From: Macrostomum lignano
Taxonomy: Eukaryota
DNA length: 24,843 nt
Direction: 5' to 3'
Assembly (NCBI GenBank): GCA_002269645.1
Contig: NIVC01005146.1
Location: 1 to 24,843, forward strand
A program made the position numbers and the translations under genes. Below the pieces are notes generated by a model. The model had not been told where the DNA came from, searched no databases, and saw nothing but the letters and a program-made list of their open reading frames with translations. Shown in pieces: positions 395 to 24,452 of this stretch; the stretch's first letter is position 1; the number at the start of each line of letters is the position of its first letter.

Positions 395-460
395 AGAGCG
401 GCGGCCACTTGACTTGTACATGGCGGGCTTTGCTTGACTCGGGAAATGTCTTTTGCTTCT

Positions 461-473
461 AGGGGGAAATTAG
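461..473 (+). other. Polypurine tract of the Gypsy element
   Basis: AGGGGGAAATTAG lies immediately before TGTAGT (474) and downstream of the integrase sequence. Confidence 0.7.
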
Positions 474-2666: not shown

Positions 2667-2678
2667 CTGACTCAGATC

Positions 2679-2710
2679 GACAGACAGACAGATGGATAGA
2701 CAGACAGACC

Positions 2711-2794
<84 letters not shown>

Positions 2795-2797
2795 CTA

Positions 2798-2828
<31 letters not shown>

Positions 2829-2861
2829 TAGACAGACAGACAGAAAGACAGACAGACAGAC

Positions 2862-2918
<57 letters not shown>

Positions 2919-2921
2919 CTA

Positions 2922-2994
<73 letters not shown>

Positions 2995-3009
2995 CAGACA
3001 GAAAGACAC

Positions 3010-3042
<33 letters not shown>

Positions 3043-3052
3043 CAGACAGACA

Positions 3053-3092
<40 letters not shown>

Positions 3093-3225
3093 CAGACAAG
3101 ACAGACAGACAGACAGACAGACAAGACAGACAGACAGACAGACAGACACAGACAGACAGACAAGACAGACAGACAGACAGACAGACAAGACAGACAGACA
3201 GACAGACAGACACAGACAGAAAGAC

Positions 3226-3260
<35 letters not shown>

Positions 3261-3274
3261 CAGACAGACAGACA

Positions 3275-3339
<65 letters not shown>

Positions 3340-3388
3340 CAGACAGACAGACAAGACAGACAGACAGACAGACACAGACAGACAGACA

Positions 3389-3459
<71 letters not shown>

Positions 3460-3473
3460 CAGACAGACAGACA

Positions 3474-3518
<45 letters not shown>

Positions 3519-3549
3519 CAGACAGACAGACAAGACAGACAGACAGACA

Positions 3550-3590
<41 letters not shown>

Positions 3591-3646
3591 CAGACAGACA
3601 GACAAGACAGACAGACAGACACAGACAGACAGACAGACAGACAGAC

Positions 3647-3677
<31 letters not shown>

Positions 3678-3760
3678 CAGACAGACAGACAGACAGACAA
3701 GACAGACAGACAGACAGACAGACACAGACAGACAGACAGACAGACAAGACAGACAGACAG
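2679..3760. repeat. (GACA)n/(TGTC)n microsatellite, ~1.08 kb, with GACAA/GACACA interruptions
   Basis: Directly visible; it accounts for all DRQT/CLSV low-complexity ORFs. Confidence 0.99.
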
Positions 3761-3770
3761 TCTCTCTCAC

Positions 3771-4436
3771 CAAAATTTTCTCCAGTTCGTCGCAGAGCGG
3801 CAGCAGCAGGGCCAGCGGAGCCGCTCCGATTTCGGCCAGCAGATTGTCCAGGCAGTCAGGCCGAGTACCGGTGGGCCGGTTAGCCGGCTCCCTCAGCGCT
3901 TCGGCCGCAGAAATTGACGCATTCGATGAGGATTTCGCAACGTGTCGAAGGCAGGTCAGGCGCAGCCAGCTCAAGGCCTCGAGTCGAGCGTCTTCTGGCA
4001 GCAGCTCGACGAGCCGCCGGGCTGTCGATGCATCTGACGTCTCCTGAGAATTTGAACGCTTGCGACGCAGATCCGGAAGCACCACTGAGTACAACTCAGC
4101 CTCAGCTGCTTCAAGGAGCGCTACCAGGCGTCGGAGAGGAGTCGGGTCTGACAAAGACATCGTGGAAGAGGACAAAGACTCGCCGGAAGCTTGACTATTA
4201 ACGCCGGGCAGCGGCGGCCAGGACGACCTGCTGGGAATGGCGCCATCCGATGCCGCAGAGTTGAGAAATTCAGCCAAACTGGCGTCGCCGATGCTGCAGT
4301 TTTCTTCTGCCAGGCAACGGTGCGCGTAGGACAGGGCGAGGCGACAAAAGTCGGCGAGGCGGCGAGCATAGGCTGTGTCCTGCTGCTGGCGCCGGCGGAC
4401 AAAGCGCTGCTCAGCATCGGTCAGGCGAGCCGACTT
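3771..4436 (-). CDS. GC-rich internal exon (666 nt, 222 aa, phase 0/0) of the RNF213-like gene, C-terminal region
   Basis: Acceptor CTGAC...TTTTCAG|AAG at 4437, donor TTG|GTGAGA at 3770. Open frame [33 protein letters not shown]...[11 protein letters not shown]. Phase matches the donor at 6421. Confidence 0.75.
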
Positions 4437-4541
4437 CTGAAACGAGTCAGTTGAGAGTCAAAGGTGTTCCTAATAGGTTTTTTTTTCAAGTATGCCGTAA
4501 CTTGACTGCCGACCCGAACCCCAACGAAAGACCTCATCCCG

Positions 4542-4612
4542 GATGCCGTGGCGCAGTGGTCCAGCGGGCGCTCTGATGTGCCAGCTGCTCAGGCTCGATT
4601 CCAAGTGCAGTC
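4542..4612 (+). mobile_element. tRNA-derived SINE head or tRNA pseudogene (Pol III A and B boxes)
   Basis: A-box TGGCGCAGTGG at 4549-4559 and B-box GGCTCGATTCC at 4592-4602 with tRNA-like spacing. The T and acceptor stems pair poorly, so this is not a functional tRNA. Confidence 0.55.
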
Positions 4613-4845
4613 ACATTAATTTGGGGCTAAATTGGAATCTCGGCTTGGCTCTGCTCGTGCAATTAACGCCCTTGAGGGCCAACCACCAAGGCACAGTGAA
4701 GTGTACATGCCTTGCCTTAGATGTATGTAGACATAAAAGAAGCATCATTTAAAACATAAAATAAGTGTCAAGTCAAAAAGAAAAGAAGAGCATCAGTCAT
4801 GAAAAGCATAAAAGAAACGTCATGTCGAATATAGAAGATTCATTT

Positions 4846-5082
4846 GGGAATTGCTACGATGTCAAGACTGGGAGGGAATTGCTATAATGCTGTGTTTCTT
4901 GGGAGAATTACTGAAATGTCAAGGCTTACGGTGGAATAACTCTTTAGGGTTAGGTCTAGGGCGGATTTGTTGAGATTTCAAAGATTATGGGGGCGTTGCT
5001 GAGATGCCAAGGCTCTCGGGGGAAGCTGATATGCCAAGGCTTACAAGGAGAATTGCTAAGGTTATTGCAAGGAGAAGCTAAA
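4846..5082. repeat. Degenerate ~27-30-bp minisatellite (GGAGAATTGCTGAGATGYCAAGGCTT-like)
   Basis: Recurring GGGAATTGCTA, ATGTCAAG and ATGCCAAGGCT units. Confidence 0.55.
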
Positions 5083-5592
5083 TGCAGTTCAAAAATTTGT
5101 ATTCCATACTTTGTTGGCTTCCCAACGGGAAGCGCAGATTGCTAGTAACTAACTAAAGCCCCTGGTAGTCATTGGAAGTCAAATCTCAACAGTTTTTCAG
5201 TGTAGAAAGTTCATTCTTACCCTGCCCTGCATGGCCTGTATAATGATACAATTGGCCAAACCATGTGGTTAGACTTATATTTGCCCTTCTAAATCTCCTA
5301 AGAAAGTGTGTCCTTCTCTGCAATATACCGTTGGGAACAAATATAAAAAATCTTTTTTTTAAAACCGTCAGCTGTAACTTGCTGTCTCCTAGCTGCTATC
5401 TATAGTTGGGGTGTGAGGCACGTTTGCTGATTGCATTGACTACGCTAGGTGAGAGAAAAATTTATTCAAGTCAGCGTTAATTTAGTCAGCGCGTGTCCGA
5501 CCAGTGCAACTATCAAGTGAATTTTGTAAGACGCAGAAACTGCGCTGCTTAGCTGCATAAAAATCTGAACATTGCATGGGTCAGCTACAACC

Positions 5593-5805
5593 AACATGCG
5601 GAGAGCGCAGTTCCAAGAAATCAACAACCCCGAATTAGGTAGCGGAACCATTTTGGAAAGACTGCAAGCGCAAAAGAAAGTGTCACATTATAGTTAGAAG
5701 CTATAATAAACGTACACCTAAAGATACATGTAACATGCGCAGAGCGCATTTCCAAGAAATCATCAACCCCGATTTTTTCCACCACCATTTTGGACAGACT
5801 GCAAG
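5593..5805. repeat. Diverged direct duplication of ~75 bp (period 139)
   Basis: AACATGCG.AGAGCGCA.TTCCAAGAAATCA.CAACCCCGA...CCATTTTGGA.AGACTGCAAG starting at 5593 and 5732. Confidence 0.8.
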
Positions 5806-5868
5806 AAGCAAACTAAAGTGCTTCTTATTCCAGTTAGTAGTTACGCTTGAATAATAAGTGTATGAATC

Positions 5869-6099
5869 CCTACTAAGGGATTGAATAAGGGCCCTTCTGC
5901 GAAGGTCCGTCGGGTTGATGACGACCTCTAGCACCGCGGCAAGGTGCAGCGCCGGGTCTCTAGTGGGGTGCACCATCGGGTTTCTGGCGGGGTGCGCTGT
6001 CGGGCCTCTAGTACCGCGGTAAGGTGCACCTGTGCTAGACACCGTCATCAGCCCGACGGACCTTCTAAAAAAGGGCCCTAATTCAATCGCTTCGGTAGG
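5869..6099. mobile_element. Fold-back/MITE-like element with ~45-55-bp inverted arms
   Basis: 5879-5923 GATTGAATAAGGGCCCTTCTGCGAAGGTCCGTCGGGTTGATGACG pairs with 6043-6088 CGTCATCAGCCCGACGGACCTTCTAAAAAAGGGCCCTAATTCAATC. Internal direct repeat CTCTAG.ACCGCGG.AAGGTGCA. No clear TSD. Confidence 0.65.
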
Positions 6100-6421
6100 A
6101 ACAACAGTTGGAATGTGAGGCGTTGCAAATTGCAAGAGTTGCGATTCGACCCTAGCCCGTCTGCATCTGCATCGACGGAACCACCGTGTCAGATCGGACT
6201 CTTGATTTCGTCAAGACGCGGTCGACGTGGTCAGTAGTGAGCCAGTTGATACTTTTTGAAAGACAAGTGGTCTGTAGCTAGCTGCATTTTACAAATGCTT
6301 ATAAAATACAACCTGGAAAGTAAAAACTAACTAGGTGTTATTTGTCTATCATTAAAGTATAAACCGTAAAAGACAATCTTAGGGTCTTTTAGAAGATTAT
6401 TCTTTTATCAAAGCTCCTTAC

Positions 6422-8722
6422 CGAATCCGATTCTGGACAATTGGCCCGAAACGCCTCTATCATTTGAGACAGGCTTCTCTGCTCCGCGCTTGCCAGCCGC
6501 GGCTCCCACGGTAGCAGGCGGACAAAGCATTTGTCAGCCAGGACCTCGCGGAAGACCGCCGTCTCTAGGAGACCCCAATCGATTTGCAAATCACGATTAG
6601 CAGTATGCGAGGCAAACATAGCCGACAGGTGATCGAGCTTGTCAGCTGACAGAGCTGGCAACCGATCCGGGCTGGAGAGGAGATCCGCAGTAGCGAGATG
6701 GCAGCAAGGTGTAGAGTCAAAGCTTTCACTTGCGGATAATAGAGGCTCCAATGCCTCACAAGTTTCGGTGAGGGCTAATCCGGCTGCCGCAATTAGAAAT
6801 TCGTTTTGATCACACAACAAGGGCTTAGCAGTCTCAATCAGTGGTGACAGTTCTGTGAAAAGAGCCCTTCGCAAAGGACGTTCAAGTGCAGCGGGTTATC
6901 TAAATTTAACATTAAGGCGTTAGGGTGCAGGCAGTTCCACGCGACTTGAGCATTGTCATGCATCGCCTTACAGTCAGGATACCTTTTCAGGAAATCCTCC
7001 ACCCTCCAGGCCTCAAACTCTTCCATTGAAAGTTGACCATCGATTCGCTTCGCAACGGCCGCGTGCCAAATTGTCAGGCGTCGAAGGTGATCAGAATTGG
7101 AAAGCACAGACCTGTGGCGCAGCACAAACTCTAGAAAGCGTCCAAACTTATCATTAACTTCTCCATCGGCCGGATCATCATCAGGGTTGCCACGGACTTT
7201 TACTTGATGGCAGTTAAACAGATGGCATATTGCATTAAGGTCGCTCTTGCACTTCGGAAACAACAGACAGTTGCGCGCTAAATGAAACTGCCTCGGTGTC
7301 GCGATTGCCTCGTCGATTTCATCGCAACTATCTGTGCTACCACAAGAGTCGACATCCAGGCCGTCCACAATCCAAGCGTACGAAAATTCACTTTTAAGTT
7401 GACGCTCGGTTAATCGATCGCGCTTAAACTTAATAATTGAGCTCTGTGGAGAAGCAAGGCAGCAAGCAAGTTGATATCGAGCAGCTGTAAGCCTGCAGTG
7501 GCTGGCTGATGAAATAGGAACTCTGAAAAGCACGCAAAGCTGAGTGAAGCACCCAAGTGCAGTCTTCTGTACTCAACTCGAGAAATTTAGCCAGTGATTC
7601 CAACTGGTCAAGAATAGCTGTTGGCTTTCTATTTGGCAGTTGAGAAAGTACGTTTAGCATGCAAGTCAACAGACACACAGCTATATATGAAACGAGTAGC
7701 TGAAGCGCTTTGTCTAAACCACTTGAGACTGGCGTGTCGTCCAGCCACTCAGTAACGTCGGTTTTAGAAAGGCCTTTATTATCAGTTGACTCACAGAAAG
7801 CACAATGGTATAATAGAATCCCTCGCATCTCCTCGGCATTCGCCTTGTAACTGTAACACTCATACAAGTGCAATATCTCGCAAAGAGCTCTGCTTCAGAG
7901 GCTCTAGGCTTTATTTTCTCGCTGCTGCAAATGTCAAGTGCGTCCCTTTTGCTTAGCTCATCAACAACACTGCCTGGTTTTGGTGGCCAATGGATAAAAA
8001 AGCTAAGGAGCGTCCGATAATACAATGTGGCTAGACAACGTGTCCAGGACTGGATTGACTGGTCAGGTTAGCTTCATCGAGGCAGCTGTCCCTTTCACTG
8101 CAGGATATTAGCAAAAGTGGATGCAGCTCATGGTGTGAAACCGCTGTTAGTCTTTCTTTTATTTCTCGAGTCAATGCTTTTTCCGGAGACTGAAAGTTCG
8201 CGAAGCACTTTTTGAACATGAACGCTTTCAATGTAGATAGAAAGCGTGTCACAATAGTATTGATTCTGATTTTCGTATTGTGATATACTTTTCCAAAAAT
8301 TCTTAATTTTTAGATAATCCGGCCTTCCTGGGACTAAAACATTGGAGAAGGCAGCAACTGCTTCAACATATAAATTTGTGTCAGAGCAGTCTAGGAATGG
8401 ATAGCGCAGACAGTAACTAGCCAGTTGAGAGGACTGACCGAAGCGAAGAAATTTGTCCCTATCAATGGTCGGCAAAAGCGACGCTGTGTGATCGAGTTTG
8501 AAGAGAGAGTGAAGCTCACCGAGTGTATATCGCTGCCGCAGACACCGTACGAATAGTAGCCAGAATGGGTGTAATTTTTGGGTGAGAATGCAGCGCTCGA
8601 GAAAGGCGAAAACGTCCGACTGATCATTACCAAAACAGAGAAACTTATTGTGCACGGCAGTTGCTTCCTTGACAGCATCGGAGAAAAAATTTATTGCATC
8701 AACCAAGTCGACCACCTCTGAA
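6422..8722 (-). pseudogene. RNF213: Frameshifted continuation of the giant RNF213-like exon (E3 core / CTD-proximal region)
   Basis: Chain of overlapping minus ORFs 8128-8715, 8031-8252, 7714-8025, 7430-7873, 6838-7533 and 6389-6874, ending at donor TCG|GTAAGG (6421). WLLFVRCLRQRY...DKFLRFG resembles the RNF213 E3-core segment as I recall it. Confidence 0.75.
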
Positions 8723-11700
8723 AATTTATCTCAAAGCTTGACTTTAGTTTGGGTCTCAGGTCTTCCAGAGATTTTAAAAGTTCCGTAGCATCCAGCTGGC
8801 TTGGCTTAAGAGTAGTCGCTAGAATGGAAAATAAGCCGGACTTTACTGTTGCATCTCCTATCTCTTCAACCTTTTCAGCAAATTGACTGAACAGTGAGTT
8901 TTCTTCGTCATCAAATTCTGTGATGTGTGACAATAAAAAGCTGGCAAAGCCCATAGGTAGTCTTCCTCTAATAAGCAGCTCTAAAATGCTATTCAGCAAA
9001 GGTTCCGTTAGCCGACGTGTATGAAGCAAACTGTAGTAAAAGTTGGACTCAATTAGCATTAGTCTTGCTTCATCTGGTGCAGAAGAATCAGAAAAAAGCT
9101 TGGCCGACTCTTTCTTCCATTCAAGTAGGACGCTGTCAGCGTCATTCGATAGCAGCCCACGACTCTGCAAACTATTATATGTAGAGATCACTTCCTCTAA
9201 TTTGATGCGCTTTCCGGCTGGTGCAAAAAATTTAAAAAATTTCAACAACGACTCGAGCTCAATTAGAAACCTGGGCCGTTCGTTCTTGTCGCGAACCAGC
9301 AGAAGTAAATTGGTGGCGATTCTTCTCCATTCGTCAAGATTTTTGATGCAGAGTTTTTCAAAGTTAGGACCACTTGGGACAAGCACTTTAAGCATGTTTT
9401 CAAAACGTTCATTTAGATCCTCAGTGTCTGAGCAAAGGACATCAACGTTTCTCTGTCGAAGGTATGCATGAACATTGAGAATTTGAGCTAATCGGAGGTT
9501 GCTGTCGTCAAAACAACCAAGAATAGTAATCACCGCGTCAGTGAGATCATCACAGTTCTTCAAACGATAACTAAGTATCTCCATCACACCATCACTCCTA
9601 TCCTGCCCACAAAAATTAATTGTAGCCATTTGAGTAAAGTCCATTAACATGTCGTCCGAAACAGGAATACGGCGCTCTAGGCCAAGCTGGGTTAAAAACG
9701 TTTGCATTTCGTTCTTGCAGTTATCAGCTGCATGGCCTAATGCTTTAAATATTTTGCAGAAACCAGAATACACAAGTGGGCTGTATGGACAGCTAATCTG
9801 CGTAAATTTGATAGGACGATCTGATTCAAATGCCGATGACTGCTCTCGCAAAATGTACTCAAACATCTGTTGCATCAGAGAATCAGCTACCGACCCACAC
9901 CATGAGCCTGCCTCAAAAAGTGAATAGTGACTCATAGCAATTAACAGCTTTGTAGTATTTTGCAATAACCGTTCTTCGATTGACGAGAGTACAAACTCGT
10001 GAAAGGAGGAATACATTGAGAGTCTTGTCGTCTCCACTGATAGGCGAACAAGCCAGTGCTCGGAATCAAAAGGCGGTTTTAGTTCCGCTTCATGCTTATC
10101 AAACAGAATAGATTCATTCAGAGTAAAGCGCCTGAAAGCGGCAGAGAATGGCGGGTTGTTTTTAAAAAAGATTAAGGCCCTCTGAATCTCCTCTTGCGAT
10201 CGCAGGACATCCATGAGAGCCTGCGGTACAACTTTATCAAACAACTGGAATAAGTAAGATTCATTTTCTTCAATGAATCGGCGCTGATTATTAAAAACAA
10301 GGTCAGAAAGAGAAAACTGCACCTCTGGGCAGATGCATTCAACGAAGTCGACTTGCCAATCAAGTAGTGGATTCCATTTCCACGAGTTTATTGTAAACTT
10401 AAGATCCTCTCTTTGTAGTTGCACTAGCATAACGACGAATTTTTTGCTTTTACATTCCGTCTGGTATTTTTTACAAATGTCGTCCAGCAGACAACGGGCG
10501 TGTAGGACATAGTTTTCATCAATGGATGGCTTGACTCGAATAATCATTAGTCCGTTTTGTTGATCTTGTCTGAAAAAATCGGAAAATACGTCAATCATAT
10601 CGCTTTCGCGTACAAAATCCATAAGTCGAATATCCCTGACAGTAAAATCCGAATCTGTCTCAAGGGATTCAATCTTAGTAAACAGAGAAGATTTCGTGTA
10701 AATATACAGCTTGCATATTTGACCTGGTTTGCAATTAGCAGCTCTGTCTTGAATAATATCCACAAAGCTCTTGTTCAGTGTTCGCGAACTCGTACTGAAA
10801 TACTCGGTTTGGTAGTTTTTCCTTTCTTCGATTGGAAGGTTAGAGAAAGTACATCTTAATACGGAGTCGGGTAGCATATGCGCTCTCAGTCGCTTAAACG
10901 CTGCATCTACGAAAGCTGAATGAGGCTCTCGTCCAAGTTTAAGCCGCTGGCCATCAAGAGCCTCGTTAATTAAGTAACAAAATGCAAGATCATCATAAAA
11001 ACCTAGAAACACTTCTGATGTTTTGAATTCAAGTTTGGACTCATTTTGAACAAGGTGGGTTAAAGTAATAACTTTCTTTTTTAGCAGTCCGCTGGATTCT
11101 TTTAATTCAAGAGCATCGACTGTATTCTTCAAAGAAAATGGTTGCTTCTCAAATCGGTTTAGAAACGGAGGATCCATGAGTCGCATATCTTGCACAACTG
11201 TTTTATTAACTAATACGATGCAACGAAAATTATTGTGCACAACACAGTTTTGATTGGCCTGAGTGCCCATCGCAATGCGACAGTACTTTTTGTTGGCGTA
11301 TTCAGAGTAATTCTGATTCAGCATGTCATACAAGCTTCCGTAGAGAAGATCGAAATCCTTAAAAATCAGGATCAACCCTTCCTCCATACACATGATTACT
11401 TCGTTGAGCTTTCGATACGTGAATTCCTCGGAAAATTGGTCTTTATCATAGCCGGATCCGTGCATTACTCTAAACTTGCGTTTCTCTTTCGTAAGTTCGT
11501 TGCATAGCAAGTCTAGACAGGAGTCGCCATCGCATATAAGCATCAAGTGACGCGCCGATGGATCTTGTAGATTTTTAAAAATCATGGTTTCAGCGACTGA
11601 TTTTTGTCGCGCTGTCTTCACACTTGCATCTAACAAATTTGGGAAGTGCTTTGTGAAAACACCCAGCGCCCTTTCGTGAGATAGCTTTAACCCGTTGAAG

Positions 11701-14700
11701 TTGCGCGCTAGTCCTTCTTTTAAAGCGAACACTTTTTCATCTTCACTATACATCTGGTCGCTTAAATACTTTAGAAGATAGTAAAAGTCGCGTAAGCCAT
11801 GAAAGTTTTCAAAGGGCTGCTTTTTATTTAAATATTCATGGCAAGCTTTAGCAATCTTCCTCTGGTCAACATCCTCAACGGTAATAGACTTTTGGTCTGA
11901 AAGAATAGCTTTTCCAGTATCGTACAACTCTTCCTCTGTCATGTCAGGCCGGGAAATGTGAATAGCTCGATTCATCTTAGCCGGGTCCAAAGCCCAGTTT
12001 GAAATTCCAATAACAGCTACTTCGCAACGACAATCGAGAGCCGACTGCGGCTCCAGAAGACTATGCAGAACCTTGAGAGGATTGTGCCGCGACTTTTCAG
12101 CCAGTCCAATCTCGTCGATCAGAACTACAGGTGTCATGAATGCGTCTCCAGATTTTTTAAGCTTGTTACGTGCCGATTCAAAAACTTTTTTTACTCCTTT
12201 TGAAGTCGATGCTTCAGAGCCTTGGAAGCTGGAGAAGCTCAACGAAGGATACTGTTGAAAAAGGGGGTGCTCAGAATCCTTGCCACGAAAGTTGCTGCGT
12301 ATGATGGAGACCGCTAGTGACTTGGAGCAGCCAGGTTTGCCAACAAGAAACACGGGGACTCTAGCATAGATGCAACAAAACAAAACAAATATATTCTCTC
12401 GAAGTGCTAAATTGACAGCTGTTTTAGGCGGACACTTCATAAAGCGAATAAAATTGGCCTGAACAATTTCTATCTCTTTACAAAGCTCATCTGCGTTAGT
12501 TTTAAAGTAGACAGAAATAGTTTCCAGATAGCGCTTTCGTATGGTACTTGTCGAGTTGCGAACGTAGTAGCATACATACAAAGCAAAAAGAGCGGCAATA
12601 CTTTCTTTATTTCGCTTAAAACTCGGATTTTCAGAACCTGTTTCGTTCCATTTTTTAAAGAATTCAAAAAAGAAGTGAAAGAATTCACAAAATCGTCGAA
12701 CGTCTCTCAGACTTGTAGCGTAGTCTGACTCTTCGTTAGAACGAACAAATTTTTGCGAAACTGTTATACACTTGACAACTTCTGCGAGCTGCAGTTCACT
12801 TTGGACATCGTCTAAGTTATCAGAGAGTGATGTTGTCAAAATTCTTCCAATGTATGCTTGCTCATCATGGTCAGTGAGACGACCAAAGTCCCAAACCAGC
12901 TCCACCATTGACTCGGGAAGAGGGTGCACTCGATAGACCAAGCTTTTCATCTCATCTTCTCGTAGTTCCTTTGTCTGAAAGCCAGCTGTGCTGCTGCTGC
13001 TCTTTGGGCGCAAAACGTAAGGATTACATGCCGCCATAAGTCTCAGGTTTGGAGGAAGACGCTCTCCAAGTAGCTTTTTGTGACATATTGCTTCTTTAAG
13101 GAGGCCGAGATGCTCACAAGTGTTAATTTCATCTAGAAACACCCATACAACGCCATCACACGCATTGCTGTAAACAAATTCTTTGTACTTCTCTTTTGCG
13201 ATACCTGACGCAGACCGAATACGTTTTACAATTTCTTCCTGCTCAACACCTGCATGAAAATTCATCACTTCAAGATCAACACCTTGAACATTAGCTAGAA
13301 AGCGAATCAAGCTGGTTTTACCGCAGCCAGTCTCACCCATGATCAGCACAGGAACATCTGCATCTATGCGGAGTGAGATCAGAACCATTTTTAAAAAGTT
13401 ATCTGCTGTTAGGCGGTAGTTCAACGTCTGGTCTGAACTAATTTGTGGAATGTCCCCTGGAGATCCTTTAGCCGCGATTCTCACAAGGCGATGAAGCAGT
13501 TGCTCCTCGGTTAGTTCAGAAAACTCTGTTAATCCTCTTGACGAACTTGCCTCGAACAAGCTTCTAAGCTCCTCAGGCACTTCATCGAGTTTTCTAAACA
13601 CAAGCTCTACTGCCGAGATGTCTTGCTTTTGAAAAACCGGCATGACATGAGCAGAATTTTCCCAGTTCAGCATGGATTTAAAGCGGTTCGCAGTCCTTTC
13701 ATACACATTAGTAAGAGTATCAACTTGCTGTTTTTGAACTGAGCCAAGTGATAAAACTGTCAGCTGCAGAGCTGAATCGATAATAAATGTCACCAAATCG
13801 CTACGGACATTGCTGTCCGTTTCAAAAACTCGTCGAAGGTTTTTTATTTTGAAGAACTCACTGCAGTAAAACTTTTTTAATTGGTTTGACATCAATTTTA
13901 AGCTATTTTCAATTAAAGAAAATGACAAATTAGCCCCTTCGTCTTGTTCTGAAAGGTAGCGTTTAAAAAGTCGCCGAAGTAAAATAACACATTCGCTCGA
14001 TGGCAAAGGCGATCCAAAATCTACTTCTTTGGTGTCCAATGTTTCTTCGTAGAGATTTTGAAGATATTTGCATACAACTTGAGTGCAGCTGAGCGGCTCT
14101 TCTGAGACACAGAGAGTTTCTAACCCAATACTCCAGCTGAGCCGTTTTTCACCGATTTGAGACAAAATCGTGAAACTATCTTCCAGCTTGTTATTGATGC
14201 TGTTGGCAACTTCAATGTAGACAGCATCAGGGTTAAAAGGAACAGTGTGATTGCTGCTTACTAAGCTCTTACAGAAAATTGCTTCGAAAATGATCAACTC
14301 AAGAACATCGGGATTATCAAGCCAGCCAATGTCAAGATGAACGGCACACTTTTTTCCTATTTTCTTTGATAGTTTCTTAATGAAGGAATCTTTCGTGACT
14401 GTGCCACTAATGTGCACATGTAATAAAGAGTCATGTCTGCACGCTTCTGAAAGTACTGTTTCAGTCTTTCCGATGCAAGGACGGTCCGAAGAATAGAAGT
14501 AAACGTGCTTAAAAGTACCTTTCACTACGGTTTTCAGTCGTTCAGATGAAATGGCCTTGACATTTACAATTTCATCGGAAAAAACGGTGAAAAGCGTGTG
14601 AGATCTGGCAGCCTTGCAAAACACGGCTACACGACCCAGCTTTTCTTTTTCTTTTTGTCGACCAATTTCAGCTATCAATTCACCCAAAACCTTCTGCTTC

Positions 14701-17220
14701 AAGTTCTGTGATTCAAGAAAGAAAAATGTCCTGTCAGACTGCTTGCTAGCCCTGCGCAAAGTAAGAATCACCTCTATTGAAGTAGTTTCTGGTGAGCAGA
14801 AAACGACTTCACTACTTAGCGGTAGCTCGCATTCCGAATTTGTCCAGACGTTTAGGAAAATTCCGATTACTTCCTTATCGTTAGGATTGATGGAAACCAA
14901 AAACAGCTTTCCTTTTTGAACATCTAGGGCGTTGTTTTTAGTAGTGACGCTTGCTTTTTCGCGCTGTAGCTCTGTAGAATGTTCTCTTAAAAAATAAAAA
15001 ATATTTTCAACACTTTCTTCCATATCGTTTTTTAAAAATGGAGCTTTATCCATGTTGATTGTCTCGTTGGTAGGCAGCGAAATGTTTAAGAAATTTAATA
15101 AATGTTCGACATCCGACCAGGATGTATTTTGGTCATTCACAAAGAAGCGAACCAAAATCATCAAATTAGTGCCAAACAAGTAATTAGCGTGCAAATACTT
15201 CTTACGCATTTCTTTTAAAAATGTGTTCCACTTTTTTAAACATTCTTCAAGTTCACTTTGTAGTCGCAGAATATCAGCGAATTTTAGCGACTCGGAAATT
15301 CTGTAATAACTGGGATGGCCGGCTTCCCAAAGTTTATAAAACATCGTAAATACATTTTCTAGTAAGTCAACATCCGTAATAAATTCCTTCAACTTTTGAT
15401 TGTCCTCCTGTGAGTCAGTAGAGTCAAAGTGTGTTGAACTCATTGTCATCAGAATACGGCTTCTGTGATCAATCATTTTTGCCAGGCTCAATCGGCGATT
15501 TCGAATTTGAACTGACATGTGAACAACTGACGCCTCATGCCTCTCTGAGGTAGTTGTACTGTCTATTTCGTCCTCTTTCTCGTCGCTCAATGCAGATGAA
15601 TTCAAACTGTTAGTAGCTGTTTTATTTATCTTTATGGTGACAGTCACCTGGTCCGGCTTCAGGCTAACAAATTCGAGTGCAAATTTTTTTGAAGTCTCTC
15701 CATGCGACCCAACACTAGAGTGAAGTTCTCGAATCGTATTTAGGTTTTTTTCACATTCATTCAACCTTTCTAACAAATTTTTCGTAGCCGTATCCTCTGA
15801 TGCGTCACGGGACTGAATATGACATCCAATAGAGCTGATTGAGCGATTGATACATTTAAATATCTCATGTATTAAAGGCTGCGAACTTGAGAAAAGTGGC
15901 TTCATTGCACGTTGTAGCAGAAACAATGAGTTGATAGTTGAAATGCTTACATCTTGACCAGCAATTTCACAGTCCATTAAGTGCTGGAAGTCAGAACCTG
16001 CCTGCTCCCGAATAAATTTTATAATTCCGTCTCTACAGTTGAAAACGCATTCAATAACGCACCAAGCGTTCTCAGTGACCGAGTTAAATTCATTGGACAA
16101 GTCATTGTGCAACTGCAAGAACGTTGACAATGTGATGTCGCTAGGCAGATTTAGGTACTCATGTAATAGTTCCAGCACACGTGAATCTTCACAGAAATTT
16201 TGACTTGAACTGTCTGAGCTGTCCGAGATGCTTCGCTTTTCTTTCTCAGGACACACAGATAAAGTTTCATGAAGCCACAAAAGTGCACTAAGTCTACTTT
16301 TCCACTCATTCCGCGACAGCACTTTGCAAAAGTTTTCAATGCCTCGACTAGCAAACAAAATTTTCTCTAGCAGTTGAAGCTCATTCGAAAGGTTAAAATT
16401 TCCTTCCAAACTTTGTGAAATATCCTCAATATCCTTTAGGCTGACCTCTTCAGCCACAAGACTCTTTGATACAAATTTTGTGTATTGATCAAAAGCTACT
16501 GGAAAAACTTCGTGCCAAAATTGTGAGCAAGTTATACCAGAGCTGCTAAGAGAGCTTTGCTCTGTAGCGACTTTCCGAAAGAAATAATTGAAAACAGATG
16601 ACTGAAGAGCAGTATTCGGGTCTAAATTGACGCCCAGCATATTTACGTCGATTCCGAATCTCTTAAAGACGGAAGTGTGAAGCATTTCACAGATTTTGAT
16701 ATTTTCGCTATGTCTCATAAATTCGGTAAAGGCCCTTTCGACCTCCTCCACGTCGGATAAATTGACGCTATATGACGTCTTGACTTCAGTAAAAAAAGCT
16801 ATAATTTCTTTCATTGCCATCTGTTGATGCCGCCAAGTATCGATAGCAGACTTCCCTTCTTTGACAACTTCTTGGAAATTTACTCTTCCAATTTGACTAT
16901 GCAGTAGCAAATTTGCAATAGAATCTATTGCCTCGCATGTTTGGCGCTCTTCATTTTCATCGCTCATATAGCCAGTGACGAACGCTTTGAATTCATTGGC
17001 TGTGAGATTGAAGCTGGTAAACTTTTGAAGGTAAGTGGACAAGCTATCAAGGCAATTTACTGCTTCGTTTACAAATTTCGTAGACAAGTCTTCATTCGCA
17101 GCTGATTCAACCCACTGCCAAATATGGCAATGGTGACGCAGGACCTGAATTTGTTGTTCGACTTCCGAGGCATTCTCTAAAGAAGCGCGCAATAATTCCA
17201 CCATTATGCTCACAGTATCT
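8691..17220 (-). CDS. RNF213: RNF213/mysterin-like giant AAA+ ATPase, uninterrupted part of a giant exon (stalk, dynein-like AAA core, E3 back/shell)
   Basis: 2,840-aa ORF with RNF213 signatures SDRPCIGKT, VLIMGETGCGKT, VFLDEINT, MAACNPY, LVYRVHPLPESM, VFLVGKPGCSKS, LIDEIGLAE, GISNWALDPAKMNR, GLRDFY, LYDMLNQNY and PFLNRFEK. Acceptor TTTTAG|A at 17221 is phase 2. Confidence 0.95.
12111..12341 (-). other. AAA4-type ATPase site: Walker A GKPGCSKS (12341-12318), Walker B LIDE (DE at 12116-12111)
   Basis: Motifs are read directly; the equivalent RNF213 module is catalytically active. Confidence 0.9.
13128..13337 (-). other. AAA3-type ATPase site: Walker A GETGCGKT (13337-13314), Walker B FLDE (DE at 13133-13128)
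   Basis: Motifs are read directly and are intact. Confidence 0.9.
14463..14489 (-). other. AAA2-type nucleotide-binding P-loop SDRPCIGKT
   Basis: Positional equivalent of the RNF213 SxRAGVGKS-type motif. Confidence 0.7.
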
Positions 17221-17811
17221 CTAAAACAAAAACGAAAGGTTGTTTTTTAGCATTAAATATTTAAAATAGCTACATTTATTTTACTTTTTACTACTAACAC
17301 GTGAATTTTTTAATTTCGCACGGCAGAGCTCAGTTGCTAAATGGATGGAATGTTTCAGCTAGTTTAAAAGACTAAAATTTAGTTATTCCAGGCCTAGGGC
17401 TTCAAGCTGGGTGTTACATTCAAAGACTACCTTAGAGACTCAAAGACTACTCAGAACTTACGAATTGTGTACTCGTAAATTTTTCAAAGGCTGACCCTCA
17501 AATTTTATCTTTTTCCAAAACGCAGCATGCAGACACCTAACTTTTCACCATTTGTTTAATACTTATTCTTTTTAAAGCTAAATTTATACAAAAGACGAAA
17601 GCATCACACCAATGTGCTAAAATGAGCCCCTGCAAAAATAGCTATAGTACAATACTACAATAAAGCAATTATACGAGTAAATAATTCGTCCTTGGTTATT
17701 TTTCGATAAGCTCTCGAACGAGCTGCATCCATTATGGAAATAAAAAATGAACGAGCTACCCCATGTGCGATTTTTTTTAAATTTTCAGCTGCATTAAAAC
17801 TTACTACTTAC

Positions 17812-19054
17812 CTATTTGGCTGATAATTCTTCGACTTAAGGACATCTTTTTGCAGAAAGTATTTTACGATATCGCTGCGTTCACTGCAGCTCTGCCGAAG
17901 ACACTCGGCACATATGTTGAATGCGACATTCAAAAGCTCTTGATTGGATGTTGAAAAAGCTGATTCTAAAGCGTTTCCACATAACCGTTGGTCCCGAAGC
18001 ACCTTTTCATACGCAACTAGACAGGCGTCTTTGAAATCTTTGTGTTCCGAATCCGAACAATCTAGTAACAGTTCTTCAGTAGCTTCTTGTGGCAATTTAT
18101 CGCTTTCTTCTTTGCAAACAAGAAGGTATGTGGACAAAATTTCATGCGATTGGCCCTTCATTTGCCCCGAAGTCTCTTTTAAATGAGTATCGATGGGCAA
18201 TGTGTTGAATTTTCTCACAAACGCAGACCGTAAGTGAGATTTTTTCTCAAGAATTTTCTTCACCAGCTGCCACGCAAAAGCGTCTTTTTGTTGAAGACAG
18301 GTAATGCTAAGAAGTTCAGCAAATGCTGGAGCACTGCAAATTTTATCCTCCGCAGGATAGTTCTCCAGAGACTTTAAGAAAGCGGCTCTAATTGTCTCAA
18401 TTTTATCAGCATTAGCGTCTTCAGAATTATCGGCTGGTAATATTATTCTGGCTGATTTAAGAATTTCTGGCACAGTTAGTCCTTTATCGCATTTCAGGCT
18501 TTCGAGTGCGCCAGATATTGCCCGTTCTCTTAGAACTTTCTTGATGAACGACAACACACTAGGATCTAATCCTTGTGTGCTTTCGGCGCTGTTCAAAAAC
18601 TCTTTTGCTTTTCGACTGCAGCTTTCTTTGTCGTTCGACGCAATATACAAAGCCAATGACGCTTCACAGTCGTTCAAATCGAAACCGTTTTTGTGAGCAA
18701 TGTAGCAAAACTCAATCATCATTTCGTCATTAGCATGGTTCTTGCTTCTCATAAGACAGTCAGTAACCACTGGAATGAATCTTAAGTCTAATCTTTTTGG
18801 ACACCTTAGCTTATCAAGAAGCGTAAGGAACGACGTGTTACATCTACCAGCACTAGATGAAGCCTTTCGATAAATTGCAAAAATCGTGTCAATGCAACCT
18901 GCATGGTCCAAGCACTTAAGGAAATCGTCGTCAAGTTCCGGAATTAGAGGATCATTAATGAAATTAAGAAACAAATCTGCCACTTTCGGTTCCAACGGTA
19001 TAACAGCGCCAAGCTGCCGTATGATTGACATGATCCGGACAAATAAAATGCCAG
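17812..19054 (-). CDS. 3' part of the transposon-split exon of the RNF213-like gene (N-arm/stalk region)
   Basis: ORF 17808-19031 plus in-frame AGILFVRI up to the TSD. Donor AG|GTAAGT at 17811 is phase 2 and joins A|GAT at 17220 to give AGA. Confidence 0.85.
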
Positions 19055-19062
19055 CAAGTGCT

Positions 19063-20232
19063 CAGTGTTGGGCAAGTTACTCAAAAAAAGTAACTTGCGT
19101 TACTGTAACTTAAGTTACCACTTTTTAAAAAGTAACTTACGTTAGCCTAGTAACTTTGAACAAAAACCCGGTAACTTTTAAGTTACTTCCGTTACTTACT
19201 TCCGTTACCTATGTTATAAACAAAATTTTCTGCTTTTTTAACATTGCAAATGTGCTGGAACAGCACAAATGATCGCGAAAGCCAGAAGGAAAAATACAAC
19301 AAAATTAATTTCAGTAACTGTATTAAATTTTAATCACTTTAGGCCCTTTCCGTAAAAAGAAGAGAAGCTGAAGGTCAGAAACGTTAAAGGCAAAACGCAA
19401 TTTAATTTTTAATAACATTATAAGTTATAATACACAAGGACAACTTAACGTAACTTCAGTTGTCCTTGATAATACATCGCTCGTAATAAGTACCTGGCTT
19501 TACTCCACTCTACAGTCTGCTTTACTAGTCTTTTTATTTTCAATTATTTGAAATTTTTTTCAATTTTTTCAATTATTTTTCAATTCATTAATATTAAATT
19601 ATTGTGCAGTGCAGTGCAGTGCCAGTGGACTTTAGTGGTGTAGCCAGGGAGGCCGCCTTAACAATCGTTGGGGCGGCAACTTCACCCCACCTGCAAGACA
19701 CCCCACCAGGGGGGGGTGGGGTTGGGCGTGGCGGGTGCATGAGGCATGGCCAGCCAGGCCAACCCCCCCCCCAATTAAAATTCCTGGCTACGTCGATCAC
19801 TGAGTGGATTTGTGGAGACTACAGATGAATTTCTTTCTTTGGTTGTTTGTTTCTAAGAACTAAACAAAATATTTTTATTAACTTAAAAACGAAAAGCAAA
19901 AATATTTTACCGAAAATAACAAAGTAAAAACATGTTTCAAGTATTTCTTTATTAATTACAGCGTAATACTGTATGATATTATTCACTTAGTTTTGAATTT
20001 AAGAATGAAAAATGCTAAAAATGTGACAACTGGCGTAATAGCTAAGCATATCAGTTTTAAATTTAAATATTGCGATTGTTGCAAAGTAACTGTAACGGAC
20101 TTCCGAAATTTGAGTAACTTACCGTTACTCCGTTACCAAAATAGGAAAGTAACTTGCGTAAGGAACGCTTTACGAAAAAGTAACTTGCGTTACCATTTAC
20201 AAGTTACTCGGTAACGGAAGTGCCCAACACTG
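19063..20232. mobile_element. Non-autonomous hAT-type DNA transposon (1,170 bp) inserted in a coding exon
   Basis: Perfect 12-bp TIR CAGTGTTGGGCA (19063-19074 and 20221-20232). 8-bp TSD CAAGTGCT (19055-19062 and 20233-20240). Subterminal GTAAC/GTTAC arrays (AAAGTAACTTGCGT at both ends). No transposase. Confidence 0.93.
19623..19802. mobile_element. GC-rich MITE-like insert nested in the hAT element
   Basis: Inverted GTAGCCAGG (19640-19648) / CCTGGCTAC (19783-19791), outer CAGTG/CACTG, G and C runs, in an otherwise very AT-rich element. Confidence 0.5.
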
Positions 20233-21019
20233 CAAGTGCTTTTCCTTCAGCAGAAAACGGATAAAATTGTGTTATTTGTGGGTTTAGAATGAAGAAAGTG
20301 ACACCGGCGATAAACTCATTAGAAAATCGGTTTTGCGCTGAAAAATCGGCGTTTTTCAGCAATGGCCTCAAAAACCTGCTGATAAAATGAATATAAATCG
20401 ATGGAATAGAATCGACGTTTTCAGTATTTTCAAAACACTCATAGCAGAAACTAAACATTAGAGTTGTTAAGGAACGGGAATCAGGTAGCTTTTTTAAGGT
20501 CTCATAGCGACCGAAGATGGCAAACTGAAGAAAGCAGTGCTCGTTAAGTTTGCGATAGCATTTTTCGCGGATTTTTCGCAATCGCCTTTCTGTGACTACA
20601 TCATTTAGTTTTTCAGTTAAAAGGCCGTGAATGCTTATCTGCTTATATCTTTCAAGAAAGACAAACTTATTTGCCAATTGTCGATACTCTTCACAATCAA
20701 ATAGATTGATCATCTCACCGCACTCACTAATATTAAATTGATATGAAATGTGCTCAGCAGCATCTGATCGAATATATACTTGCCATGCAGGCAAGCAGTA
20801 GTAGTTGGAGCCGTCTACTTTATTCGGGATTTCTTGGTACATTTCGAACTTCTTGTTTTTGAGCACCAGAGAAACAGTGAAACCATGCATTTTCCTTAAC
20901 ATATAACTCATTGCTACTTCTGCCAGTTCCTTACGAAGGCTGGGTTTTCCAACATTACAAAACTGATTATCTAAATAGCTGAATAGATCAGGCAGACAAA
21001 GCCGAAACTCGTATTGAAC
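20233..21019 (-). CDS. 5' part of the transposon-split exon of the RNF213-like gene
   Basis: Acceptor TTTTTAG|GTT at 21020, phase 0. Open frame VQYEFRLCLPDLFSYLDNQF...MSYMLRK...YPFSAEGKAL runs into the TSD. Confidence 0.85.
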
Positions 21020-22703
21020 CTAAAAAGTTATGTGCAATGTGCATGGTGGTGTTATTTGATTTGAAAGTACAAGCCTAAACTGACAAGACTTGGCGTTGAT
21101 ACTTACGTATTTGTTTTGGCTTTCTTGTGTCAAGTTCTGATACTCAGATTTACTAGACAAGACTGCTGACAGTAACTGAAATGTTAAAATAGAATATAAC
21201 TTTTAAGTATGTAATGCATATGTATGTAGCTATTTAATTTTTTGCACCTAGAGAAAATTGAGATATTATACAGGGTTTCTTTGCAAAGGTTCCAACTGTG
21301 AAATCAAACAAAGCTGTCAATATGCGCAGTTCTTTCACAGCTAAATGTTCTCATAACGGCTATTTCCTGCTAAAGTTAGCTGGCAATATGAGCTAACAAC
21401 AAAATATGCTGCATGTACTTGTAAATGTGTAAGTGAAGTAAAGCTCTGAAAATGACACAATCTCAGTTATTGAAGGGACCATGCAGTTGCCTGCCCAGTA
21501 ACCAGCAACATAATTAGATTATCTAAAAAGGCCAATGCTAATTAACCACTTCAATTACTCTTGAAGATTCCTGCCAGTCTAGAAAGTTAACTATGCCACT
21601 GCCACTGCTAGGACAAATCGTCCTTCACAAGAAGGGGGCAATGCAAACACAAGCTGATAATTTTTGGATAGAGAAGACTAAATTGATAATAACAACTAAA
21701 TGCTATAATATACTCGTAATTATTGATGCCATTTAAAATTTGGAAGGCAATGCCCCTCTCTCCCGACTCCGCCACGCCTGGGCACTGGGATGCTGTTATC
21801 ATAAAAGTATTAGAAATTATTTATGAATAAATACAACTCTGTTGAAATATACTTGCATATGGTCATTAAAATTGCCTTTTGTCATGCAAAATGTAATGCA
21901 ATAATAAAAAGTAATGCAAAATGTTTTAACTATGCATTGTTTAGGCACCCTATACTAAATGCTCCGTTAAAGCTTGCAGCAGCTGGAGGTTCGAGATAGT
22001 CTGGCTATTTCTCTTGATTACAAATACAAGTGTTTTTTTTAAATTATCGGTCTTATTTTTAAAGTTTTCGAAGTTATAGCTAGTTGAGTCAGAGGTTATA
22101 TTTAATTTGAGAGAAAGAGAGCAAAATAGAGAATAGGAGACTGTATTGGCTTTGAGCCAAGCTGAGTGTTTGAAGAGAGAGATCTACTGAATGCGCATGC
22201 TAGTGATCTATAAAATGAGGGCAATTTTGTTAGAGAAAAGTGAAAGGTAACAATCAGCCTTGCACGGTAACTTTAGCTGACTGCTGAATAGCCCCTGACC
22301 AGACTGGGTGAATGATCTACAGCATGTTGCAAGTTAAAGATAGAATATTTAGTATCTTACACTTGGGCACTAATATAGCTACCGGGACAACTAGCCGTGC
22401 AAGGAAATACAAAGGACTTTTAATATTTATAAAAATAATTTATAGAAAAGAAGGCAAACTTGTTTGCTCGTAACGTACATTAACTCACAGAAAGCAAAAG
22501 TCAAGGAAAGTTTAGGATTTAGAAATTTAAAGTTAAGTATAGGAATTAGATTTCAGCTTTAGATTGTCAAGCTTTACACTTAGGAAGAAATTTATGGAAG
22601 AGATTACAAAAAGGCTTAAAGCCAGCGTTAGAAGTAAAAAATAATGAATTCAAAGGGTACAAAAAATTTAGAAGTTAAAACTTGTTCTCTTAACTTCAAC
22701 TCA

Positions 22704-22999
22704 CGGCTGCGGCGCAGGGGAGGGGGGGGCCGTAGCCCCGGGTGACCATCCGCGGGGGGGTGACCACCCCTTTAACAAAAAATTCTGTAAGTATGCACAA
22801 GGCCACGAGAAATTTTGCCAAATGCCAGGGGTTAGGGGGCCATAGTTCGGATTGTGCATTAGTGTACGCCTTGTTTCTGGTGTTGCGGCGCACCGAATGA
22901 CCTTTTTTTGGTCCCTCGTTCTGTCTCCTAGGGGGCAGGGGGGTGACCACCCAACCACGCCCCCCCCCCAACTGGAGGTGCTGCGCCGCCACGCCACTG
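22704..22999. mobile_element. GC-rich MITE (~296 bp) with TCAACTCA target duplication
   Basis: TCAACTCA at 22696-22703 and 23000-23007. Inverted GCGGCGCAG/CTGCGCCGC. Right end CTGCGCCGCCACGCCACTG; left TIR decayed. Internal GGGTGACCA repeats. Confidence 0.7.
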
Positions 23000-23008
23000 T
23001 CAACTCAC

Positions 23009-23876
23009 CTCCGATGATACTGATGCATCCACTTCAGTATTTCCACCGAAAGCAGTCTTTGCAGCAGTTGTATCGGCACAAGTGTCAGTAGCGTCTGACT
23101 TTGCTGCAGTTGTATCGCCACTAGTGTCAGTAGCGTCTGACTTTGCTGCAGTTGTATCGCCACTAGTGTCAGTAGCGTCTGACTTTGCTGCAGTTGTATC
23201 GGCACAAGTGTCAGTAGCGTCTGACTTTGCTGCAGTTGTATCGGCACAAGTGTCAGTAGCATCTGACTTTGCTGCAGTTGTATCGCCACTAGTGTCAGTA
23301 GCGTCTGACTTTGCTGCAGTTGTATCGCCACTAGTGTCAGTAGCGTCTGACTTTGCTGCAGTTGTATCGGCACAAGTGTCAGTAGCGTCTGACTTTGCTG
23401 CAGTTGTATCGCCACTAGTGTCAGTAGAGTCTGACTTTGCAGCAGTTGTATCGCCACTAGTGTCAGTAGCGTCTGACTTTGCTGCAGTTGTATCGCCACT
23501 AGTGTCAGTAGCGTCTGACTTTGCTGCAGTTGTATCGGCACAAGTGTCAGTAGAGTCTGACTTTGCTGCAGTTGTATCGCCACTAGTGTCAGTAGCGTCT
23601 GACTTTGCTGCAGTTGTATCGGCACAAGTGTCAGTAGCGTCTGACTTTGCTGCAGTTGTATCGGCGCAAGTGTCTGTAGAGTCTGACTTTGCAGCAGTTG
23701 TATCGCCACTAGTATCAGTAGCATCTGACTTTGCTGCAGTTGTATCGGCACAAGTGTCAGTAGAGTCTGTCTTTGCTGCAGTTGTATCGGCACAAGTGTC
23801 AGTAGCAGCTGAGCTTTTGGCATAATATTCAGTAGTGCCAGTAGGTGACTTTGTTGCCGTTTTGATAGTCCGTGCA
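23009..23876 (-). CDS. Exon encoding a Thr/Ala/Asp/Ser-rich tandem repeat region (868 nt)
   Basis: Donor GAG|GTGAGT (23008) is phase 0 in the TDT..AAKSD frame and matches the acceptor at 21020. Acceptor AAG|T at 23877 is phase 2 and matches the donor at 24035 (AAG acceptors are less common). Confidence 0.75.
23048..23803 (-). repeat. Coding minisatellite: 18 x 42 bp, TDT(CA/SG)DTTAAK(S/T)D(A/S)
   Basis: Counted from the ORF translation: 9 CA-type and 9 SG-type units. Confidence 0.97.
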
Positions 23877-24035
23877 CTTGTTGAAGGCAAATGAAATTTT
23901 GAAAATGGTGAGTTATAACTGAAAACATAACTTTACAAGCCATACTCAAAAAGTTCAATTAGCGATAAAAAAACTGAAAAAATGCAAAATAAATAATGGA
24001 TAAGCAATTAGATAAAACACAACAAAAACACTTAC

Positions 24036-24452
24036 TGCAGCTTCTTAGCATTCTTCAACAGGGACTTGAAATATTCTTCTTCAAACAAAACACAGAAGGC
24101 AATGTCATTTTGAACTTTAACACTTTTAGTTATCAATTCAATTAAACCAGTTTGTTGACAAACAAAATCCTTTAAATGTTGAAGCTGGCTAGGAGAGAAA
24201 TCCACAATTGATATTTTTAATTCAATTTCAGGAAAGCCTTTGAGAAAATCTTCATCATCTGATGAGTCACTGTCAGTGTTGGAACTACCAGAAACTTGTT
24301 TTTAGTCACTGTCACCAAGTTGAAGTTGCCATTGCTTTGCTTCTGAAGTAACAGCTGCAAATCATCTTTCTTGGCATCAATTTTTTGACACAATCTTGAA
24401 AACTCTTTATCATTTAGTTGATACTTGATTTCTTCCTTCAGCTTGTAGGGAA
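24036..24452 (-). CDS. Upstream exon of the RNF213-like gene (one frameshift)
   Basis: Acceptor TTTTTCAG|TT at 24453, donor CA|GTAAGT at 24035. PYKLKEEIKYQLNDKEFSRLCQKIDAKK...VTK then QVSGSSNTDSDSSDDEDFLKGFPEIELKISIVDF...KKL. One extra A in the A5 run (24299-24303) makes it continuous and phase-consistent. Confidence 0.7.

Follow-up and report, generated by a model that had tools for sequence, protein, structure and literature searches.

The stretch analysed here, called the window throughout, is the whole of a 24.8-kb contig (24,843 nucleotides, NIVC01005146.1), short and redundant, from the Mlig_3_7 assembly (GCA_002269645.1) of the neopolyploid flatworm Macrostomum lignano. Its minus strand, from ~2528 to the contig end, is occupied by a giant RNF213-like gene. 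By its sequence, this is a real RNF213-family gene of ~5,000 residues that keeps the motifs of the ATPase motor but has neither a RING nor the RZ finger's catalytic residues. The gene has already been deposited, uncharacterised, as BOX15_Mlig007869, and its sequences are public as hypothetical proteins. Searched exhaustively with HMMER, the final 551 residues of the big open reading frame (ORF) matched a 100% identical protein (P0078, PAA90242.1, BOX15_Mlig007869g1, on NIVC01000119.1 of the same assembly), and a homology search matched the N-terminal exons to BOX15_Mlig007869g3 (P0085). Mlig_3_7 was assembled from PacBio reads with Canu and polished with Pilon; it is redundant, with 180 Mb of duplicated non-repetitive blocks of at least 95% identity. 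Its gene models derive from a genome-guided transcriptome. We refer to the gene in the window as copy A and to a second copy, carried by contigs L002 and L003, as copy B. A further contig, L001, equals the window over 15 kb save for four indels; within 8720-6080 the two then differ at 55 positions. Of the four indels, which lie upstream of 8721, three (22960, 22735 and 19708) are in or near the G/C-rich stretches noted below.

The gene runs, in order, through exon 0 (off the contig), exon 1 (E1), the repeat-bearing E2, the mini-exon E2b, E3, the ~10.8-kb giant E4, E5 and E6 (Table 1), with GT-AG introns of matching phases at 24036-23919, 23008-21176, 21106-21020, 17811-17221, 6421-4437 and 3770-2591. 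These exons are joined in transcript-derived models: P0084 (copy B) joins E0-E1-E2-E2b-E3-E4, P0085 joins E3-E4 and P0082 joins E4-E5-E6. The exons sum to 14,950 nt, or ~4,983 aa, to which exon 0 adds 13 aa, in agreement with the size near 5,000 aa proposed in the first-pass annotation of this DNA, made from the letters alone. The six-exon model of that annotation was right in part and required revision. What it counted as two exons (~21019-20233 and ~19054-17812) is a single exon into which a 1,170-bp transposon has been inserted, its C-terminal exons at 8730-6422 are the continuation of the giant exon with frames shifted by single-base gaps, and it had missed the mini-exon (21175..21107), the last exon (2590..2531, outside its range) and the off-contig exon 0. 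In the window an open frame of 2,851 codons spans 17246..8694 on the minus strand, and the giant exon ORF is uninterrupted from 17220 to 8722. Downstream of 8722 long ORFs follow in shifting, overlapping frames; the same stretch in copy B (L002) is one 1,709-codon ORF running to the donor at 6421, which sets the limits of the giant exon at 17220..6422. Almost all of the protein comes from this one 10.8-kb exon. The deposited coding sequences (CDSs) P0085 and P0084, which represent both copies, skip 10 nt (TCCGACGTGG) at 16748-16757 (minus strand) after ...SYSVNL, leave the giant ORF and stop 10 codons on (RRSKGPLPNL*). It is through this skip and early stop that one transcriptional unit has been split into 'g3/g2' and 'g1' genes; the skip could be an artefact of annotation or transcript assembly, or a real RNA-level event.

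Table 1 Coordinates of the gene parts and associated features in the window (TIR, terminal inverted repeat; TSD, target-site duplication).
Feature	Position	Strand	Details
Exon 0 (start codon)	~5-45 nt past window end	-	MASESGLTACVSI, 13 aa
Exon 1	24037..24452	-	~139 codons; acceptor TTTTTTCAG/ at 24453, donor CA/GTAAGT at 24036; homologous to P0084 aa 14-154
Exon 2	23009..23918	-	303 codons, phase-matched; 18 tandem 14-aa units
Mini-exon 2b	21107..21175	-	69 nt, 23 codons LLSAVLSSKSEYQNLTQESQNKY; acceptor ATTTCAG/, donor /GTAAGT, phase 0-0; matches P0084 aa 266-290
Exon 3	17812..21019	-	677 codons without the transposon and one TSD copy; donor AG/GTAAGT at 17811, phase 2
Transposon, non-autonomous, hAT-like	19063..20232	-	1,170 bp; 12-bp perfect TIRs CAGTGTTGGGCA; 8-bp TSD AGCACTTG at 20233-20240 and 19055-19062
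Giant exon 4	6422..17220	-	~3,600 codons: linker, AAA core, hinge, E3-like module; donor SDS/GTAAGG at 6421
AAA3 Walker A GETGCGKT	13314..13337	-	aligned to human K2426 motif; Walker B FLDE ends ~13128
AAA4 Walker A GKPGCSKS	12318..12341	-	human GKPGSSKS, K2775; Walker B VVLIDE ends ~12111, human E2845
RZ-equivalent zinc knuckle	7793..7872	-	YCTCMSVTVYKANAEEMRG(I/T)LLYHCAFC; split in the window by a 1-nt gap at ~7849
Exon 5	3771..4436	-	222 codons, C-terminal domain; acceptor TTTCAG/, donor TTG/GTGAGA; 100% identical to P0082 aa 1698-1919
Exon 6 (last)	2531..2590	-	20 codons plus stop; TGA stop 2528-2530
(GACA)n microsatellite	2679..3760		~275 units; last intron, noncoding

The motor region establishes the family. 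In a phmmer search against PDB chains the core of the giant exon matched the cryo-EM chains of human and mouse RNF213 with E=4e-116 over 925 residues (query 1255-2179 to human 2423-3362), while the alignment to midasin covers only 147 residues; Pfam recognised only AAA, AAA_5 and AAA_7 in the 2,851-codon ORF. At the residue level the AAA3 Walker A stretch IMGETGCGKT is the same as in human and the AAA4 Walker B reads LIDE against human VLDE, and the Walker A and B motifs of both modules align with the human ones column for column. The corresponding human ATPase residues are K2426/E2488 in AAA3 and K2775/E2845 in AAA4 (PMC11549300). Membership of the RNF213 family, as first proposed, is thus upheld by the search and the aligned Walker motifs, and the AAA3 and AAA4 catalytic motifs (GETGCGKT/FLDE and GKPGCSKS/LIDE) are intact, as had been read from the DNA.

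Direct searches with the C-terminal tail gave nothing significant, whether by Pfam on ten fragments, by phmmer of all window ORF segments against 25 homologs, with a clade C profile (clade C being P0001-P0008), in a search of the PDB (E<=10) with the 669 C-terminal aa of the giant ORF, or in a homolog search with the 763-aa conceptual tail. The tail was linked to relatives only via an exhaustive representative search and profile-profile comparison. With hhalign the M. lignano tail aligned to that of clade C with 90.5% probability (E=1.3e-6, 819 columns), and the clade C tail aligned to an RZ-containing group including fish RNF213 with 100% probability (E=6e-50). Because it passes through clade C in two steps, the C-terminal homology to RNF213 is transitive, not direct.

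No zinc finger of the ligase type was detected in this module. Pfam found neither RING nor RZ (PF20173) in the window fragments, the 1,939-aa C-terminal model, the 3,947-aa model or the octocoral relative, with P0082 and P0083 included in the scan. A regular expression for a C3HC4 RING matched three fish RNF213s only among 25 homologs and none of the M. lignano models, and a custom RZ hidden Markov model (HMM), built from nine homologs and able to detect the RZ fingers of nine distant homologs, had no match in the window or in P0001-P0008. In the human RZ finger, zinc is bound by C4505, H4509, C4525 and C4528, the nucleophile is C4516 and the general base is H4537 (PMC11549300). The RZ-region alignment places YCTCMSVTVYKANAEEMRGTLLYHCAFC of M. 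lignano and CxCG...CPxC of clade C at this position. The M. lignano CxC and CxxC that align to zinc ligands are kept, the nucleophile Cys-Gly loop and the IGG..H are absent, and four Cys and one His at this position are conserved in both copies. The loss of the RING that the first-pass annotation had suspected agrees with the Pfam and pattern searches. Its suspicion of a degenerate RZ finger is supported by the alignment, in which CxC...CxxC is retained and equivalents of human C4516 and H4537 are missing. Its reading of the disarmed E3 as a peculiarity of this paralog stands in one part only: the catalytic residues are absent, but this state is shared by the closest clade, P0001-P0008, octocoral protein included, and is not confined to this paralog. 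The protein may have lost its ligase activity.

The module might instead have diverged without being disarmed, and the protein could still be an E3 ligase that relies on another nucleophile (a Cys of the knuckle or another C-terminal Cys) or on an unrecognised RING-like element. Purifying selection on the tail (omega, or dN/dS, of 0.25; see below) and the four Cys and His held in common by both copies would fit such a ligase, and the ~650 unassignable residues upstream of the aligned tail leave space for one. Set against this are the absence of the Cys-Gly loop and the IGG..H base in clade C as well as in M. lignano, and the want of any RING pattern or Pfam zinc-finger match in the 1,939-aa and 3,947-aa models. 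We consider a ligase of this kind possible, if rather doubtful.

In the window, exon 3 is interrupted by a 1,170-bp element (Table 1). Removal of the element and one TSD copy leaves a stop-free ORF of 677 codons. The element is also present in L001, and the site is empty in L002 and L003, where a single GGCTCTTG lies in an uninterrupted 681-codon ORF of copy B. An 8-bp TSD with terminal repeats beginning CAG is the hAT pattern. There is no long ORF within the 1,170 bp, and no other copy of the element was found in the four loci examined. Exact excision of the element would not be GT-AG, and the only in-frame canonical option uses weak sites and deletes ~14 residues. The deposited CDS bridges the element exactly, and this exact bridging may come from transcripts of the transposon-free copies. 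The allele that carries the transposon is probably null or mis-spliced, and extra gene copies would make it tolerable.

The second kind of interruption lies in the tail of the giant exon, its last 2.3 kb, where single-base gaps or insertions of the window fall at ~8720, 8220, 8037, 7849, 7687, 7646 (two), 7527, 7484 and 6880. Short introns were considered as the cause of the frame switches and rejected, as all phase-compatible GT..AG pairs score at most 3.4 against 10.5 for a confirmed intron and the copy B ORF is continuous. A decayed tail, with a truncated protein ending at the stop at 8691-8693, was likewise discarded, overturned by the three-way alignment of the window, L001 and L002. In this alignment the window has no unique substitution, and eight of its ten private 1-nt gaps sit on columns of single-nucleotide polymorphism (SNP) between L001 and L002. 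The gaps thus coincide with differences between the other two contigs and are for the most part consensus artefacts and not decay, a base having been dropped where haplotypes or homeologs disagree; independent mutation does not explain the pattern. Exon 1 of the window also carries a 1-nt deletion relative to copy B near 24303 (GTGACT[C]AAAAAC), which produces an apparent frame switch and an in-frame TAA. L001 has a private frame break of its own at 14395. In L002 the 5' half of the copy B giant exon (4204-10032 of that contig), AAA region included, lies in at least six frames and the tail is intact, the mirror image of the window; we presume these breaks to be consensus errors of the same kind.

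Selection was gauged between gene copies with the ratio of nonsynonymous to synonymous substitution rates (dN/dS, Nei-Gojobori). The ratio was 0.39 for exon 3 between the window and L002 (dS 0.18), 0.33 for the 5' 2,160 codons of the giant exon between the window and L003, and 0.25 for the tail between L002 and L001. With dN/dS of 0.25-0.39, the gene, its C-terminal module included, is under purifying selection in all parts compared. The divergence between copies is itself mosaic: against L002 and L003, the N-terminal exons and introns (window 21808-17480) are 87-90% identical, and from the giant exon onward (17232-1) identity rises to 98-99%. Such a pattern points to homeologs that have undergone gene conversion or recombination, or else to contigs that are chimeric.

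The interruptions could also be taken at face value, with the window copy a genuine decaying pseudogene that was knocked out by the transposon and then acquired true frameshifts in the tail and exon 1. Such decay would account for a transposon that sits in coding sequence and cannot be spliced out cleanly at GT-AG sites, the in-frame options using weak sites and deleting or inserting residues, and for ~10 frame-breaking indels in 8720-6422 plus the one in exon 1. Yet eight of the ten tail gaps lie exactly on SNP columns with no unique window substitution, as is typical of a collapsed consensus and not of mutation; upstream, 3,500 codons are uninterrupted, dN/dS is 0.25-0.39, and the assembly is documented as redundant PacBio/Canu with Pilon polishing. 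A pseudogene is accordingly an unlikely reading of the window copy. More generally, strings of frameshifts in redundant assemblies of neopolyploids can be consensus artefacts at homeolog sites, and a call of pseudogenisation needs a second copy. A single-copy canonical RNF213 ortholog, with its RING and RZ intact and hidden by divergence, would share the overall length and the co-linearity with human (AAA3 Walker A at ~residue 2,450 of the reconstructed protein versus 2,426), but at least two copies and a diverged paralog group exist, the RZ HMM that is positive in nine distant homologs is negative here and a canonical RING occurs only in the fish homologs, making this highly improbable.

The copies found in M. 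lignano are the two near-identical, homeolog-like ones and one diverged paralog group, P0079-81, which is ~30% identical in the tail and whose gene models are without the whole knuckle region. The lineage-expanded family that had been suggested is supported to the extent of these two copies and this group. The automatic UniProt names of P0079, P0080 and P0083 ('RING-type E3 ubiquitin transferase listerin' and 'RING-type domain-containing protein') were not borne out, as Pfam finds no RING in P0079-P0083.

The N-terminal part is the most idiosyncratic. Exon 2 contains a tandem repeat of 42 bp x 17.9 at 23057-23806, which encodes the 14-aa, S/T/D-rich unit SDATDT[CS][AG]DTTAAK, with 18 units in the window versus ~5 in copy B. 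Pfam and homology searches with E1, E2, E2b and E3 found no relatives outside M. lignano, and there was no Pfam match to CBM20 in the N-terminus. AlphaFold modelling of 20233-21019, which encodes the first 262 E3 residues, gave a predicted local distance difference test (pLDDT) score of 42 and was uninformative as to a CBM20-like fold. The description of this N-terminus in the first-pass annotation, as unrecognised and bearing an 18x repeat, agrees with these results. 'Non-canonical' is a fair term for it, yet unsurprising, because RNF213 N-arms evolve fast (PMC11549300).

Taken together, the window probably holds copy A of a transcribed RNF213-family gene of ~5,000 residues in which the motor is conserved, the RING and the RZ catalytic residues are absent, the frame breaks are mostly artefacts of poor polishing of the contig and the transposon is a real, derived insertion. 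Several observations weigh against parts of this reading. The indels at ~8220 and 7646 and the exon 1 deletion fall outside the known SNP sites and may be genuine; the copy B contigs are frame-broken in the 5' half of the giant exon, and no single contig has a fully intact gene. The two transposon-carrying contigs share 15 kb of identical sequence and may be one haplotype assembled twice. The knuckle was placed at the RZ position through profile alignments in two steps, with moderate strength (90.5%), and the ~650 residues that separate AAA6 from the aligned tail had no match in these searches.

If the probable reading of a motor-conserved gene holds, the protein would be an ATP-driven machine of the RNF213 type, which may oligomerise or coat a target surface. 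Its C-terminal module, conserved but lacking the known catalytic dyad and a RING, would not be expected to carry out RZ-type transthiolation. The protein might then act as a sensor, scaffold, coat component or regulator, or else use another nucleophile; an immune function may be supposed from family membership, and a sensor or decoy role is conjectural. We tentatively envisage an old RNF213 subfamily spread across flatworm, octocoral and marine eukaryotes, in which the motor and the RZ zinc scaffold are constrained and the RING and both catalytic RZ residues have been lost. Its pseudo-ligase paralogs could serve as ATP-driven sensors, coat nucleators or regulators, and the copy-variable N-terminal repeat arm could be a recognition or spacer region. 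To our knowledge, no E3 other than RNF213 unites a dynein-like motor with RZ-type transthiolation. A subfamily that is ligase-deficient yet constrained would be, if true, a natural separation-of-function variant with which to ask how far motor and ligase depend on each other. It would also mean that the ATPase and coat function is selectable on its own, and would offer an invertebrate amenable to RNA interference and transgenesis for the study of RNF213-type motors without ubiquitylation. In the literature searched we found no paper linking Macrostomum and RNF213, which is not proof of novelty, and equally no description of an RZ subfamily without catalytic residues, whose absence there is no such proof either.

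Other features of the locus are minor. The intron between E4 and E5 contains, at 5886-6080, a 56-nt inverted repeat with 77% complementarity and its arms 83 nt apart, inside a spurious 169-codon ORF, which looks like a small element resembling a miniature inverted-repeat transposable element (MITE). A similar G/C-homopolymer-rich motif occurs both at 19747-19774, within the transposon, and at 22944-22971, in the E2-E2b intron. About 900 bp downstream of the gene stop, a short minus-strand ORF at 1490-1633 has a PHD-finger match (Pfam PF00628, E=1.2e-5; CPECRKAVRNSDPAIDCDTCGKWYHITC); no deposited model includes it, and it could be a piece of some other gene or element. Short tandem repeats with units of 15 and 39 nt (TTTCGTCAAAAGCC...) occupy intergenic positions 1240-1340. 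The downstream flank (window 1-1000; L002 21000-25400) is rich in GC (54%) and carries long ORFs that overlap in several frames; the next gene called in L002 lies ~8 kb beyond and has F5/8 type C (discoidin) domains. Scans of the window for Rfam families and for tRNAs were negative.

The features of the locus can be set beside four known systems. The exon 3 insertion shares with non-autonomous elements of the hAT superfamily the 8-bp TSD, short perfect TIRs starting with CAG, small size and the absence of a transposase-length ORF; the assignment is by TSD and TIR structure. The best matches of the protein are the members of clade P0001-P0008, which include Dendronephthya gigantea LOC114521280 and otherwise come from marine metagenome or SRA assemblies, with 30-32% identity over ~2,000 residues. 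Pfam sees only AAA domains in them, and they share the degenerate RZ of the form CxCG...CPxC without the nucleophile loop. They differ in being only ~31% identical to the flatworm protein, in N-termini and ~650 residues after AAA6 that cannot be aligned with it, and in having no repeat exon. The RZ-containing RNF213-like proteins outside vertebrates (P0009 of Effrenium voratum, P0010, P0012, P0013, P0018, P0019, P0022 and P0023) share the AAA core and C-terminal homology, and most of them are also without a canonical RING, but they keep the full RZ signature C-x-C/H ... G-x-C-G ... C-x2-C-G-x2-I-G-G-x2-H that the flatworm protein lacks. With vertebrate RNF213 (mysterin; human 8S24, mouse 6TAX) the flatworm protein has in common the giant size of ~5,000 aa, the dynein-like AAA core at 30-34% identity over ~930 residues, identical or near-identical AAA3/AAA4 Walker A and B motifs, a C-terminal region that is homologous (transitively, by hhalign) and a fast-evolving N-terminal arm. 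Unlike its vertebrate counterpart, it has no RING, retains at the RZ position only the CxC...CxxC zinc ligands with no equivalents of C4516 and H4537, and bears in its N-terminus the 18x 14-aa S/T/D-rich repeat, with no CBM20 detected by Pfam; its gene, moreover, places nearly all of the coding sequence in one 10.8-kb exon.

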